DNA of 64,000 nt, from sequence record ON529852.1. The stretch is one strand, 5' to 3'. Positions 20,401-28,316 of this stretch are shown one piece after another. Within the stretch, counting starts at the first letter, position 1, and the number at the start of each line of letters is the position of its first letter. The notes under the pieces were generated by a model that was given only the letters and a program-made list of their open reading frames with translations, made no database searches and was not told where the DNA came from. A program made the position numbers and the translations under genes.

Positions 20401-20416
20401 CGCTCTCGCGCCAAAG

Positions 20417-20444
20417 AAAAAAGCGGCGGGATTGCTCCCGCCGC
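20417..20444 (-). terminator. intrinsic (rho-independent) terminator of the hfa-like operon
   Basis: GCGGCGGGA-GCAA-UCCCGCCGC 9-bp stem followed by UUUUUU. Confidence 0.9.
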
Positions 20445-20470
20445 CTCTCATTCAGCCTTGATCCGAAGAC

Positions 20471-21538
20471 TTACGGACGGGCGGTGAAGGAGCCCGAGTT
20501 GCCCACCGCCGAGGCGGAGGCCGACAGGTTGCCGGCGACGATCGAGCCGCCGACGTTGACTTGCGACACCTGCGGACCGGTGTTGACCTGCGTGAAGTTC
20601 GGCAGGTTCACCGACGCGCCGATGAAGCTGGCCGACGAGCCCACGGCCGAGGCCGAAGCGGTCAGGTCGCCACCGACGCTCACCAGGCCGATGTTGGTCT
20701 GGGCGAACTGCGGGCCGTGATTGGTCTGCTTGACCGAGGTCCAGCCGCCGTTGGTGATCGGGCCGTTCGCCGAAACGAAGAGGCTGTTGCCGAACGCGCC
20801 GGCGCTGGCGTTCAGGTTGTCGTTGACCAGGGCGGCGCCCACATTGGTCTGGGCGACTTGGACGCCGGTGTTGGCCTGGTTGGCGCCCGGAACGGCGCCG
20901 AGCGTCGTGGTCAGGCGCAGGTTGTTGCCCACGGCCTGCGCCATCACGTCGGCGCTCATGTTGACGGCGACGCCGACGACATTGGTCTGCGCCAGTTGCG
21001 CCCCGCCGTTGATCTGGGTCAGGTTCGTCTGGACATTGCCCTTGTTCAGAGCGGCGTTGTTGCCGAGCGCGACCGTTTCGACGTTGAGGTCGCGGCCCGT
21101 GGCGACCAGGCCGATGTTGGACTGCGCCGCTTGCGAGCCATAGTTCTCCTGGCGGCCCAAGACGTCATTCTGATTGGCGCCGTTGGTCGTCAGGGTGTTG
21201 CCGATCGCCTGGGTCGAGACGTTCAGTTCGCGGCCGACGGCCACCAGGGCGACATTCGCCTGGGCGGATTGAGCGCCGGTGTTGAACTGGGACACGTCGC
21301 GCGCCGAGATGTTCTTCGTCGCGCTGGTGGCGGCGGTGGCGTCGTAGAACAGCGAGTTGCCGATCGCCTGCGGCTGGACCGTGGCGTCGCGGACGACGAT
21401 GGCGCCGACGACGTTGGTCTGACCGGCTTGCGGGCCGGAGTTGTTTTGCGACTGAGCGCCGCCGATCGACTGGGCCGAAGCGGCGCCGGCGATCAGGAGG
21501 GCGGCCGAAGCGGCTGCCAGAATCAAAGTCTTACGCAT
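20471..21538 (-). CDS. secreted Q/N/G-rich repeat protein, HfaD/curlin-like
   Basis: Sec signal MRKTLILAAASAALLIAGAASA; seven repeats QxNxGxQx(A/S/G)QxN(V/I)...AxG(N/S); third gene after hfaB-like. Confidence 0.75.
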   Translation of the reverse strand: MRKTLILAAASAALLIAGAASAQSIGGAQSQNNSGPQAGQTNVVGAIVVRDATVQPQAIGNSLFYDATAATSATKNISARDVSQFNTGAQSAQANVALVAVGRELNVSTQAIGNTLTTNGANQNDVLGRQENYGSQAAQSNIGLVATGRDLNVETVALGNNAALNKGNVQTNLTQINGGAQLAQTNVVGVAVNMSADVMAQAVGNNLRLTTTLGAVPGANQANTGVQVAQTNVGAALVNDNLNASAGAFGNSLFVSANGPITNGGWTSVKQTNHGPQFAQTNIGLVSVGGDLTASASAVGSSASFIGASVNLPNFTQVNTGPQVSQVNVGGSIVAGNLSASASAVGNSGSFTARP

Positions 21539-21632
21539 ATGAGATATTCTCCCGTTGATGATGTGACGGCGCTCGGATGAGCCCCGCTTACTCACGACCG
21601 AGCCCTGAGGCTACGCCGGTCGTTCCTCCCCG

Positions 21633-21678
21633 CCGGGACGTCCCGGAGGTTGGCGACGGGGCGGCGTGGGCCGCCCCG
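21633..21678. promoter_or_regulatory. intergenic 14-bp palindrome plus 9-bp hairpin between hfaB-like and hfaD-like genes
   Basis: CCGGGACGTCCCGG (21633-21646); CGGGGCGGC-4nt-GCCGCCCCG (21657-21678). Confidence 0.6.
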
Positions 21679-21691
21679 AATGATGATCGGA

Positions 21692-22582
21692 CTAGGTCCG
21701 GAAACTGGCGTCGACGAGCGGCGCGCAGTCGCGGAAGTAGTTGCCGTAGAGCGGGTTCAGCAGTTCCAGCGTGGCGTATTCCAGCGTGGCGCGGACGCCC
21801 AGTTGGAGCGGCTCCTGGCCTTGCTTGCCGGTGTTGATGTCCACCAGGTAGTCGCCGAAGAAGCGGAACAGGCCGGCGCGGGTCTCGTAGCCGATGATCT
21901 GCTTCTGCACCGAGACGGTCTTGACGACCCTCAGGGACTTGGTGTCGACCAGCCGCAGGTCCACCGCCGTGTTGATCACGTAGTAGCGCATGCCGGCCTC
22001 GAACAGGCTGATGCCCAGTTCGGCGCCGCCCGAGACGATGTCGTAGTTGACCTCGGTGATGCCGCCGACGATGTAGTAGTCCGAGCCCTGATACTGACCA
22101 GCGGTCAGGTTCAGGCGGCGCAGCGCGGCGGCCGAAGGGTTCGCCGGATCGTAGGCGGGGTCCTGGATCAGTTGGTTCTGCGTCAGGGTGGCTTCGCTGG
22201 AGGCGATGTCCATGTCGAAGCGTTCGACCTGCTCGACGCCGTCCAGCTTGCCCAGGGCCGACATGACCATGAGCGAACCGCCCTGGGTGATGCGGAAGCC
22301 GCCTTCACTGGCCTCGTTCGAGAACTTGCCGGTGTAGTCGCGGATTTGCCCCACGGCGATACGGTTCGGAACCACGCTCTGACGCGTCGCCTGGGCGAAG
22401 CATTGGATGGCGGGGTCCATCGGGCTGGAGTTCAGCGTCGGGCGGCTACCGACCACGACCGGGGCCTGGCCCTGGGCGTTCAGCATGGGAGAGACCGGGG
22501 CGGACGTCGAGGCGCAGGCGGCCGTCGACAGGGCCAGCGCCGACAGCGCGGCCAGGGTGATGATGCGGTTCTTCATGTTCAT
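21692..22582 (-). CDS. hfaB: CsgG/HfaB-family outer-membrane secretion lipoprotein
   Basis: Signal peptide with lipobox-like TAAC; IAVGQIRDYTGK, ITQGGSLMVMSAL, VERFD, YYIVGGITEVNY, AVDLRLVDTKSLRVV, QEPLQLGVR are CsgG/HfaB hallmarks. Confidence 0.9.
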   Translation of the reverse strand: MNMKNRIITLAALSALALSTAACASTSAPVSPMLNAQGQAPVVVGSRPTLNSSPMDPAIQCFAQATRQSVVPNRIAVGQIRDYTGKFSNEASEGGFRITQGGSLMVMSALGKLDGVEQVERFDMDIASSEATLTQNQLIQDPAYDPANPSAAALRRLNLTAGQYQGSDYYIVGGITEVNYDIVSGGAELGISLFEAGMRYYVINTAVDLRLVDTKSLRVVKTVSVQKQIIGYETRAGLFRFFGDYLVDINTGKQGQEPLQLGVRATLEYATLELLNPLYGNYFRDCAPLVDASFRT

Positions 22583-23076
22583 GCAGCCCCGCCCGGTTGA
22601 CCATTCGTCTGCGAGCCGGAGCCCGTGTTCGTATTGGTCTGGTTGCCCTGGCTCGTGACGGTGTTGTCACGAATGGTGGTCGTGGCGTCCTGGGTGTTGC
22701 CCGTCGAGGTCTGGTTGTTGTTGACCTGATTGGACGAGCCCGAGCACGTCAGCGAGGCGCCGACGGCGGAAGCCGAGCAGTTGTTGTGGGTCACCGACTG
22801 GTCGATGAACTGGAACACGTTGTTGGTGTTCGCGGCCGAACCGCCAAGGAGGCCGCCGGCCCCAGCGACGGCGGCGGGATTGCCGGCCTGAAGCTGATCG
22901 AAATATCCGGCCTTGTTCAGTTCGAACAGTTGCAGGCTGTTTTGCTTGGCGACGCGATCATTGGCCGTCCCGAAGCGCCACGGCGCGTCTTCACCGATGG
23001 AGCGATCCTGGGCGTGCGCGGCGCCCGCCAGCATGACAAGAGCCGCAGCGGCCCCCGCGAGAATCTTCATCCTCAT
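22579..23076 (-). CDS. secreted N/Q/T/S-rich protein, HfaA-like by position and composition
   Basis: Start MRMKIL with GGAGGG RBS; signal peptide ending AHA; low-complexity N/Q/T/S C-terminus; ATGA-coupled to hfaB-like. Confidence 0.6.
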   Translation of the reverse strand: MRMKILAGAAAALVMLAGAAHAQDRSIGEDAPWRFGTANDRVAKQNSLQLFELNKAGYFDQLQAGNPAAVAGAGGLLGGSAANTNNVFQFIDQSVTHNNCSASAVGASLTCSGSSNQVNNNQTSTGNTQDATTTIRDNTVTSQGNQTNTNTGSGSQTNGQPGGAA

Positions 23077-23118
23077 ATAAAAGTCCCTCCGTAACGGCGC
23101 GTGCGCCTTGATGATGGG

Positions 23119-23151
23119 CCGGGGCGCGGGAGACTTCCCGCCGGCCCCGGT
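23119..23151 (-). promoter_or_regulatory. 5' leader hairpin of hfa-like operon
   Basis: CCGGGGC/GCCCCGG outer stem plus GCGGG/CCCGC inner stem just downstream of the predicted start site. Confidence 0.55.
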
Positions 23152-23165
23152 CAGTGATCGAGGGT

Positions 23166-23191
23166 GTAAAGAAACCATTTGCGTCTGTCAA
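23166..23191 (-). promoter_or_regulatory. conserved phage promoter repeat (class I) driving hfa-like operon
   Basis: TTGACA-GACGCAAATG-GTTTCTTTAC. Confidence 0.75.
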
Positions 23192-23200
23192 CACTCGCCG

Positions 23201-26798: not shown

Positions 26799-27622
26799 CC
26801 CGGCGCGTCGCCGTAATCGCGTTCGATCGGTTCAGCGCCCGCCATAATGAACTCGGTGCGGTTGACGACGCGCTGGAGCGGCGGGACAGACAGACGGGTC
26901 ATGGAGGAGCGAACCACCGACGTGTCCTCAAGACGCGCCGGGCGCATGGCGGCGGGAATGCGGGCGGCCTCGGCCGGCGTCAGGGGCCGCTCGACCGTCT
27001 CCTTGCGCACGAACGTCCCAAGACGGAACGCCTCAGGGTAGTCGGCGAACACCACGCCCTTCTCGGCGATCATGTCGACCATCGCCTGGCGCCCCTTGCC
27101 ATGCATCTGGCTCGGCGAGTATTGCGCCCGGCACGCCATGGAGGCGGCGTTCTTCTGGCAGTCGAGGTTACGCCACAGGAACATGTTGGCGGCTTCCCAC
27201 GGGTGGGGAAGCTGACAGACACGCGCGTCGAACGCCGGCAGGCGATCGTTGAACGGCTCCCAGTAGCGGATGGCGTGCGCCATGCGCGCGGCCGCCATCG
27301 ACGCCAGCACCGAGGTCATCTTGACGATCTTGCCGGAGAAGAAGATGTCGCTCTCGTAGTCGGGCGCCTCCCACACCAGGCTGATCTCGTCGGACTGGAC
27401 GTAGCCGATCTTGGCGTGGGTCTTGTCGACGAGATACTCCGCCACCACGATCATCGCCTCGGTCATGCGCGGGTCAAACGGCCGCTCCATGCCCTTGGTG
27501 AACTTGGAGAAGCCTCGGCCGTCGATGCGGGCGTAGACCGGCAGGGACGGGAAGAAGCGGCGCGCGGTCTCGCGTCGCTCGTAGTCCTTCATGCGGTCGC
27601 CGAGTTCGTCCTTGGTCGTCAT
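26795..27622 (-). CDS. tRNA(His) guanylyltransferase Thg1-like 3'-5' polymerase
   Basis: LGDRMKDYE, YARIDGRGFSKFT...PFD, GYVQSDEISL, FDARV, F.WRN.DC.KN motifs. Confidence 0.92.
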   Translation of the reverse strand: MTTKDELGDRMKDYERRETARRFFPSLPVYARIDGRGFSKFTKGMERPFDPRMTEAMIVVAEYLVDKTHAKIGYVQSDEISLVWEAPDYESDIFFSGKIVKMTSVLASMAAARMAHAIRYWEPFNDRLPAFDARVCQLPHPWEAANMFLWRNLDCQKNAASMACRAQYSPSQMHGKGRQAMVDMIAEKGVVFADYPEAFRLGTFVRKETVERPLTPAEAARIPAAMRPARLEDTSVVRSSMTRLSVPPLQRVVNRTEFIMAGAEPIERDYGDAPG

Positions 27623-28098
27623 GGGAATCGTTTCCTCCGCGCAGCGGCCACAATGGGATCGGGCTTCTTATCGACCACCGCTCGGGGTGATCGCTCGCTG
27701 GCCTTCGGCTGCGCTCGCGCCCGGCTGCCGCCGGCCTGTCCTTCGGACGCCGGGGCGGTCTTCTTGGGCGTCTCGGCTTTCTCGACCTTCTTGGGCGTCT
27801 CGGCCTTCTTGCGCTCCGCCATCTGGGCCATCACGGCCGGATCGGGCGGGGCGATCTCGTATTTGATCGGCGCCAGCTTGTCCCAGCCGAGCGTCTTTTC
27901 GTTCTCCATGGCGGCGCGCCCGGCGTCCTCCAGGGACATCAGCCGACCGGCCTTCTTGGTCCGGCCCGATTCGGTCGGCAGGTGGACCTCGTAGAGGACG
28001 CGCCCGGTCTTGGTCTCGACCTTGCCGGTCTGGACCAGGTGCATGATGACCATGCCGGCCTTGTTGGCGTAGGGACAGCTATGCAGGGGTGCGCTCAT
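27619..28098 (-). CDS. hypothetical protein with Lys/Pro-rich tail
   Basis: KAETPKK duplicated. Confidence 0.7.
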   Translation of the reverse strand: MSAPLHSCPYANKAGMVIMHLVQTGKVETKTGRVLYEVHLPTESGRTKKAGRLMSLEDAGRAAMENEKTLGWDKLAPIKYEIAPPDPAVMAQMAERKKAETPKKVEKAETPKKTAPASEGQAGGSRARAQPKASERSPRAVVDKKPDPIVAAARRKRFP

Positions 28099-28316
28099 GG
28101 CAGTCCCTTCCAGAACGGAACGAAATGGAGGGTGACGGCGCTGACGTCGCCCAACCGCATGTAGAAGGGAAACCCTCTGTGGTCGTCGGCGGTGAGATTG
28201 GTCAGGGCGCCCGTCTCGGTGTTGTAGGTCCGGGTAACGCCGCGCGCGAAGAATCGCAGCACCTTACCGCTCTTGAGGTGCACGCGCACCTCCTGCTTGA
28301 CGAAGGGATTCCGCAT
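28095..28316 (-). CDS. hypothetical protein
   Basis: ORF in coupled chain. Confidence 0.65.
   Translation of the reverse strand: MRNPFVKQEVRVHLKSGKVLRFFARGVTRTYNTETGALTNLTADDHRGFPFYMRLGDVSAVTLHFVPFWKGLP

Follow-up and report, generated by a model that had tools for sequence, protein, structure and literature searches.

The closest described relative of the protein treated here is HfaD of Caulobacter crescentus. In that species only, HfaD has been characterized as a protein that requires HfaB for surface localization, forms multimers resistant to sodium dodecyl sulfate (SDS) and heat, and anchors the holdfast; experiments have demonstrated amyloid or SDS-resistant polymerization for HfaA and HfaD of C. 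crescentus only (PMC6707917; bioRxiv 10.1101/2022.07.20.500906). Curli (CsgA/CsgB and CsgG, type VIII secretion) also combine a CsgG-family lipoprotein with Q/N-rich, glycine-turn repeat subunits that carry Sec signal peptides. CsgG-like pores of phages have been puzzling, because no secreted subunit accompanied them (PMC9004378). We analyzed a 64,000-nucleotide (nt) stretch, referred to below as the window, of the genome of Brevundimonas phage vB_BpoS-Kabachok (ON529852.1; 356,285 bp; Dolichocephalovirinae), which infects B. pondensis LVF1 and was isolated from sewage. The gene of interest, KABACHOK_01640, is annotated as encoding a hypothetical protein and is called D here; it lies behind the genes for an exported protein (A') and a CsgG/HfaB-family lipoprotein (B). 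Neither curli nor holdfast is mentioned in the paper describing Kabachok (PMC10070969). Positions are those of the window unless stated otherwise; adding 62,000 gives the record coordinate.

D resembles HfaD in being exported, in its size, in a repeat of ~45 to 48 amino acids (aa) that starts with Q-x-N and ends with A-x-G-N, in a predicted beta-helix with three strands per coil, and in the place of its gene directly downstream of that for an HfaB/CsgG-family lipoprotein. It differs in having seven repeats rather than ~eight and a C terminus ending in ..ARP rather than ..PG, and in being encoded by a lytic giant phage, with an upstream partner that is not HfaA and a mature part that is exchanged as a cassette. 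Compared with curli, the predicted coil of phage D is 45 aa long with three strands rather than ~22 aa with two, the curlin repeat (~22 aa, S-x5-Q-x-G-x-G-N-x-A-x3-Q, recognized by Pfam) is not matched, and neither CsgE nor CsgF could be shown to have a homologue in the phage operon. The CsgG/CsgF pores of pelagimyophages and of the Methylophilales phage Melnitz (PMC9004378) are likewise built on a virus-borne gene for a CsgG-family outer membrane channel, but those phages have no fiber subunit gene and their hosts have no curli genes, whereas the Kabachok channel is accompanied by two exported partners, one of them a large repeat subunit. The location in a giant phage, the position as the third gene, after a CsgG-like channel, and the exchange of the mature protein all go beyond an earlier note on this DNA, which dealt with the repeats of D.

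The repeat protein and its relation to HfaD

The open reading frame at positions 20471 to 21538 on the minus strand encodes 355 aa and is identical to the GenBank coding sequence. The pattern Q.N.G.Q..Q.N[VI] matches it exactly seven times (aa 31, 84, 130, 175, 221, 271, and 317), with spacings of 53, 46, 45, 46, 50, and 46 aa, and A.G[NS] comes ~20 residues after every copy. Alignment of the units yields the consensus Q.N.G.Q.AQ.NV....V...L.....A.GN, with 27 to 48% identity in pairs (mean, 36%). Not one of 20,000 composition-preserving shuffles of mature D contained even a single copy of the motif, and A.G[NS] was observed seven times against an expectation of 1.35. The seven-repeat Q/N protein that the earlier note had described at this place is therefore confirmed, and the five example strings quoted there are all present in the translation. 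From residue 23 onward the protein consists of 15% A, 12.6% N, 12.3% G, 11.4% V, 9% S, and 8.7% Q, with no Cys. Tandem Repeats Finder detected no array at the repeat period of ~135 to 150 nt in the D gene, its sole result being a two-copy 15-nt repeat. As none was detected at the DNA level, the units are old and diverged rather than the product of recent duplication.

A word-index search with D returned only three relatives, and an exhaustive HMMER search with an alignment of these found 107 among 1.84 billion representatives. The NCBIfam HfaD model (NF037936) matches 65 of the 108 proteins scanned (the query and its 107 relatives); D itself is matched over profile positions 46 to 318 of 374 (31.3 bits; E value, 1.3e-7). 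Comparison by hhalign of the phage-type D profile with 23 canonical HfaD sequences gave a probability of 98.6% (E value, 8.5e-16) over 286 columns. The ESM Atlas clusters nearest D carry PF27277 (HfaD), and that family is precomputed as a weak match on the D relative P0001 (66% identical). Scanned against a Pfam set that did not contain PF27277, neither D and A' nor canonical HfaD and HfaA nor two D proteins from contigs gave a match, and with E values up to 1, D matched no Pfam family, the curlin repeat included. Searching solved structures by sequence with the D profile returned signal-peptide noise only.

Of the 121 Caulobacterales genomes sampled, 64 have a canonical HfaD, at 113 to 441 bits. 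Canonical HfaD has the same Q..N / A.GN periodicity as D, with a unit of ~46 to 48 aa, and in all 23 canonical sequences there is an invariant CxxC near the C terminus (C361, C364). Directly upstream of D lies an HfaB-like gene (235 bits with the NCBIfam HfaB model, below the 300-bit cut-off), and the product of the first gene has an hhalign probability of 3% to HfaA. As the profile-profile match and the shared periodicity are combined with a missing CxxC and a score below the cut-off, D is, judged from its sequence, a divergent member of the HfaD superfamily and neither an HfaD equivalog nor a new family.

Many of the D relatives (alignment A2, P0154-P0226) are short, ~215 aa, and have the same repeat; their Atlas clusters bear the name 'Holdfast attachment protein D domain-containing protein'. 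In some Caulobacterales, second loci with extra HfaB-like genes occur away from the canonical hfa locus (e.g., G467:C2:48652-54112, G460:C22:116337-119294, and G495:C1:800421-802171). The G467 and G460 loci also contain HfaD-like genes that score below threshold, and only two HfaB-like genes were seen at the G495 locus.

The AlphaFold2 model of D, built on a 32-sequence alignment, is all-beta, with a mean predicted local distance difference test score (pLDDT) of 89.6 and a predicted template modeling score (pTM) of 0.87. Each repeat contributes a triplet of strands of ~10, 12, and 16 residues joined by glycine turns, and D is accordingly predicted to be a protein of the parallel beta-helix class, with seven ~45-residue coils of three long strands each. 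A model of canonical HfaD from its own alignment (pLDDT, 90) has the same strand pattern, with triplets of 10/12/17 residues. The structural neighbors of the D model in VIA-align are headed by FHA (1rwr; Z, 9.8; root mean square deviation [rmsd], 3.0 Å over 135 residues), PfbA (4mr0; Z, 9.0), and EtpA (8cpk; Z, 8.4); curli CsgA follows with Z values of 7.9 (8c50; rmsd, 8.0 Å) and 7.3 (8enq; rmsd, 8.2 Å). The canonical HfaD model has the same neighbor list, with Z values of 14.4 for 8c50, ~14 for SufD-type helices, and 13 for PfbA. Foldseek found no match to the D model with an E value of <0.01 in PDB and BFVD (curli subunit; E value, 6.9), and the Atlas structure matches all had TM scores of <0.5. 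With the pLDDT and pTM of the D model and with beta-helix and solenoid adhesins as neighbors, the beta-solenoid for which the earlier note had suggested an AlphaFold check is supported as a prediction.

Two-partner and autotransporter beta-helix adhesins (FHA, EtpA, HMW1, and PfbA) share the predicted fold class of D and provide its best structural matches, but their coils are about half as long, so that only about half of the D model aligns. This is seen coil by coil, about half of each D coil aligning to the neighbors, and it fits a D coil about twice as long as usual. No two-partner-secretion or autotransporter family was matched by A', B, or D in Pfam and NCBIfam. A literature search found no description of the HfaD repeat as a wide three-strand beta-helix coil; a coil of this kind may help to explain the SDS-resistant multimers of the holdfast anchor.

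Exchange of mature D between phages

Five Brevundimonas phages (Kabachok, Marchewka, Domovoi, Papperlapapp, and Bambus) carry the A'-B-D triad. Among them, A' is 92 to 100% and B is 95 to 100% identical in amino acid sequence; D falls into three allele groups, Kabachok/Marchewka (92% identical), Domovoi/Papperlapapp (100%), and Bambus, which are ~30% identical to one another. This is the same level as their distance to the alleles of Caulobacter phages. The borders are sharp in DNA comparisons of Marchewka with Bambus: identity is 100% through A', B, and the spacer and 95 to 100% into the D signal peptide, to ~21510, falls to 25 to 60% inside D from ~21467 to 20554, and is back at ~100% from 20494. 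The signal peptide is conserved in all D alleles and is the 5' recombination anchor of the cassette, and the D alleles of Brevundimonas phages keep the ..RP C-terminal end.

Kabachok has a genome-wide median identity of 98% to Domovoi and 89% to Marchewka. The opposite pattern, with Kabachok nearer to Marchewka than to Domovoi, occurs in only four of 890 windows along the Kabachok genome, and three of these four are D. All alleles match the phage-type profile at 205 to 275 bits with the signal peptide retained. Within one allele, the ratio of nonsynonymous to synonymous substitution rates (dN/dS) is 0.16 for D, compared with 0.17 for A' and 0.13 for B, and D is therefore under purifying selection. 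Silent cassettes and a diversity-generating element were considered as sources of the variation and rejected, since each phage genome has one D gene, there are no repeats at the DNA level, and the divergence is far beyond that of point mutagenesis.

Marchewka and Bambus are 99.4% identical at the median and differ in ~32 divergent islands, among the most divergent of which is D. Examples of such islands, in Marchewka coordinates, are 54.5-56, 110.5-116, 196-197, 221.5-223, and 265-269.5 kb. The islands between these two whole genomes (L151-L186) are sharply bounded and offer a ready map of recently exchanged cassettes.

The fourth incongruent part of the Kabachok genome is a single 400-bp window at positions 27,500-28,200 of ON529852.1 (L224:2000-2700), outside the window analyzed here. 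Identity to Marchewka is ~70 to 92% over 27,500-28,100, with none beyond 28,200, and Domovoi and Bambus match there hardly or not at all. The site is an ~870-bp unannotated gap adjoining a tRNA-Arg gene. In the search for a locus that covaries with the D allele, this 27.5- to 28.2-kb site was the only one to fit, which is too little to claim such a locus.

A proposed secretion module and its possible roles

We put at roughly 60% the probability that the phage carries a self-contained secretion module of the curli/holdfast-anchor (type VIII-like) kind and that D is its secreted subunit. B, the presumed secretion channel for D on the basis of its family, matches Pfam CsgG (PF03783) at 64 bits, above the gathering cut-off of 20.8, and residues 45 to 277 match E. 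coli CsgG structures (E value, 3e-9); its N terminus, read directly, is a lipoprotein-type signal peptide ending in ...STAAC. By inference from the Hfa and curli systems (PMC6707917; bioRxiv 10.1101/2022.07.20.500906), D would be exported by Sec to the periplasm during infection, would cross the outer membrane through the B channel, by analogy with HfaD on HfaB and CsgA on CsgG, and would be displayed on the surface of the infected cell, where its open beta-helix ends could stack end to end into stable multimers. The scaffold would consist of the conserved Q/N and A-x-G-N positions, the rest of mature D being exchanged between phages as a cassette.

Since three ~30%-identical alleles occur in phages that were obtained on strains of a single species, B. 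pondensis, the variable face of D is probably recognized by something that is itself variable, e.g., competing phages or kin. We tentatively suggest that D serves phage-phage or surface recognition on the infected cell, for instance in cloaking or exclusion, a role that the allele pattern leads us to favor slightly over replacement of the holdfast anchor. A bolder version, to which we give less credence, is a virus-encoded, type VIII-like display system of Caulobacterales giant phages with D as its variable specificity subunit, i.e., a beta-helical fiber on infected cells with a polymorphic exposed face under frequency-dependent selection. Ancient alleles would then be shuffled between the conserved signal-peptide and 3' anchors, and D could, depending on the allele, shield against competing phages or trap them, or else serve as a kin-specific adhesive. 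If true, this would be the first complete fiber-secreting module of the curli/Hfa type shown to work for a virus. The sharp exchange of a D cassette in lytic phages, together with its putative display on the host surface, points to an unstudied layer of phage-phage and phage-surface interaction.

Several observations weigh against a secreted HfaD-like subunit with a recognition role. The 31.3-bit score of D is below the 100-bit equivalog cut-off of HfaD, and mature phage D has no cysteine and hence no HfaD CxxC, as is the case in most phage-type relatives. The structural matches are middling (Z ≤9.8), with no Foldseek match at an E value of <1. A' was rejected as an HfaA, given the 3% hhalign probability against canonical HfaA, and the analogy with HfaA/HfaD codependence may consequently not apply. 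With ~32 other mosaic islands, cassette exchange is not unique to D; exclusion or recognition is read from the allele pattern alone; and none of the RNA runs searched contained the stretch.

The homology of B and D to HfaB and HfaD would also suit auxiliary holdfast-anchor genes, by which the infected cell is made to keep, or to shed, its polar holdfast. A cell that keeps it would stay in rosettes and biofilms, the birthplace of swarmer hosts, after host expression is shut off. All isolated phages with the triad infect holdfast-forming Caulobacterales (Brevundimonas and Caulobacter), more than half of the sampled genomes of which (64 of 121) have canonical HfaD, and such a role is possible. 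We nevertheless rank it slightly lower, because the phage B protein is no nearer to HfaB of Caulobacterales (41 to 50% identity) than to other CsgG/HfaB proteins (42 to 52%, in Stellaceae, Rhodospirillales, Sphingomonads, Parvibaculum, and Burkholderiales). In a tree of 170 sequences, B of the Brevundimonas and Caulobacter phages forms one clade with 25 metagenome sequences (support, 0.988), apart from 40 canonical HfaB sequences, and its nearest cellular member is from a Stellaceae metagenome-assembled genome (MAG). A' is also unrelated to HfaA, D is devoid of the HfaD CxxC, and three alleles of ~30% identity in phages of one host species are hard to square with a single conserved holdfast polysaccharide. 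The same tree and identities led us to reject a recent capture of the module from the host.

A lysis-timing or permeability pore, in which the CsgG-like channel is the functional part and D a mere plug or regulator, is unlikely. It has precedent in Melnitz and the pelagimyophages, whose CsgG-family genes occur without fiber subunits and were proposed to form a lysis gate (PMC9004378), and Melnitz CsgG is a distant match of B (28.6% identity). In the phages considered here, however, the channel always comes with two conserved exported partner genes in one operon, D is a repeat protein of 272 to 500 aa under purifying selection, and no gene named or matched as a lysis gene lies within 2 to 7 kb (annotated phages) or 6 to 10 kb (contigs) of the triad. 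Still less probable is the earlier note's reading of D as a functional-amyloid family of its own, with a curlin-type repeat of double length. The lack of a Pfam or curlin match and of a solved relative by sequence, the mere 107 relatives among 1.84 billion representatives, and the presence of curli CsgA among the structural neighbors (Z, 7.3 to 7.9) would suit a new family. The profile-profile match at 98.6% and the HfaD model matches of 65 of 108 proteins speak for HfaD instead: the likeness to HfaD that the note had also seen is thus borne out, by these matches and by the PF27277 Atlas clusters, and its distinct family is not, canonical HfaD having the same ~46- to 48-aa repeat and predicted three-strand unit. 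Nor is the unit made of two curlin repeats, the predicted coil having three strands rather than two curlin hairpins and the Pfam curlin repeat giving no match. Least credible of all is a virion component, such as a beta-helical fiber or head-filament protein. Beta-helix tailspikes are indeed among the structural neighbors, but virions are assembled in the cytoplasm, whereas a cleavable Sec signal peptide is kept in all D alleles and a gene for an outer membrane channel lipoprotein invariably accompanies that for D. The operon, moreover, is set among small early-type genes, not in a structural module.

With a channel and two exported partners, of which D is the repeat subunit, an operon of the Kabachok type makes the function of phage curli genes testable. 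Tractable systems are CcrColossus gp241-243 in Caulobacter crescentus and Kabachok in B. pondensis.

Operon features, distribution, and neighboring genes

A', B, and D lie on the same strand and constitute one operon that is closed by a terminator, with D as the last gene (Table 1). The region upstream of A' is a possible promoter, to judge from its hexamer; a consensus scan of it found no sigma-70 site. The B-D spacer folds at −72.9 kcal/mol as RNA (z, −3.2 against shuffles), contains a GGGAG ribosome-binding site ~8 nt 5' of the D start codon, and may serve for processing or attenuation. Its identity between Kabachok and the four other Brevundimonas phages is 73 to 77%, lower than that of the flanking genes. 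The terminator region (128 nt) folds at −50.5 kcal/mol (z, −2.7), and in CcrColossus a terminator is annotated at the corresponding position, behind gp243.

Table 1. Window coordinates of the A'-B-D operon and its parts
Feature	Position	Strand	Description
Possible promoter region	23077..23200	-	Intergenic, upstream of operon; TTGACA -35-like hexamer, read from sequence
Gene A'	22579..23076	-	165 aa; Sec signal peptide; first operon gene
Gene B	21692..22582	-	296 aa; CsgG/HfaB-family outer membrane lipoprotein; 4-bp overlap with A'
B-D spacer	21539..21691	-	153 nt; several G+C-rich hairpins
D signal peptide	21473..21538	-	aa 1-22, MRKTLILAAASAALLIAGAASA/QS; typical Sec type, read from sequence
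Swapped cassette	~20500-21480	-	Mature D; borders from Marchewka vs Bambus DNA
Mature D	20474..21469	-	aa 24-355; seven ~45-aa HfaD-type repeats; predicted seven-coil parallel beta-helix
Intrinsic terminator	20413..20445	-	GC-rich stem, GCAA loop, U6CU3 tail; 26 nt past D stop

Besides the Brevundimonas phages, the triad is present in the Caulobacter phages CcrColossus (gp241-243) and CcrPW (gp250-252). The GenBank name of B is 'CsgG-like curli assembly protein' in CcrColossus; in CcrPW it is 'putative transcription activator protein hfaB'. D is annotated as hypothetical in all seven phages, as is A' in six, the seventh being CcrColossus ('putative lipoprotein'). A tblastn search revealed no triad in Kikimora, Gurke, phiCbK-like phages, or Bertelyvirus, and a literature search found no paper discussing phage hfa genes. 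The triad also occurs on metagenome contigs (64, 122, and 499 kb) whose gene content resembles that of giant phages; there, D is 272 to 500 aa long. The largest (JGI contig Ga0496889_0000001, L138; 499,572 bp), which is probably a megaphage, has phage-like genes and a triad whose 475-aa D has an unmarked PF27277 match. Exact pieces of the Kabachok D allele are present in 2025 wastewater runs from another study; the 'RNA-Seq' runs with this allele are probably DNA and are evidence of presence only. The plasmid search gave a single match, from Variovorax, to part of the B gene, which is annotated there as a hypothetical protein.

A' has a conserved N-terminal GE[DN]xxW[QR]F...GY[YF] block followed by a Q/N/S/T/G-rich tail, and it matched nothing in Pfam or NCBIfam. 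Its position corresponds to that of hfaA, without detectable relatedness to HfaA. At 28 of 80 non-Caulobacterales loci, a gene of the A'-type family is found just upstream of a CsgG/HfaB gene, and at only two of the 80, in a Stellaceae MAG and a Rhodospirillales MAG, is there a D-like gene downstream. Of the cellular genome loci retrieved, these two triads are the most closely related to the phage module, and both are from outside the Caulobacterales. The Stellaceae triad (L014:2174-4848) is chromosomal and adjoins eutB; the Rhodospirillales triad (L015:3480-6994), also chromosomal, adjoins cytochrome bc1 genes.

A' was also compared with CsgF, and homology was not supported, hhalign giving a probability of 0.07% against E. 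coli CsgF and a profile search of PDB giving no support, so that the following resemblance is a lead only. The N terminus of mature A' resembles the channel-binding N terminus of E. coli CsgF (GTMTFQFRNPNF), and the A' gene, like csgF, is immediately upstream of the CsgG-family gene. In the A' genes (22579-23076; L138:7499-7999; L187:1912-2328) and their kin, the segment in question reads GEDAPWRF in Kabachok, GEEGSFQFRNPAE in the 499-kb contig, and GENxAWQF in cellular relatives. The clearest likeness to the FQFRNP segment of CsgF is SFQFRNP in the A' copy of the 499-kb contig. Pairs of an A'-like exported Q/N/S/T-rich protein and a CsgG/HfaB lipoprotein are widespread in Sphingomonads, Burkholderiales, Rhizobiales, Parvibaculum, and others (L014-L093) and are apparently uncharacterized so far; among the protein matches, the B-type lipoprotein of such pairs is often fused to OmpA.

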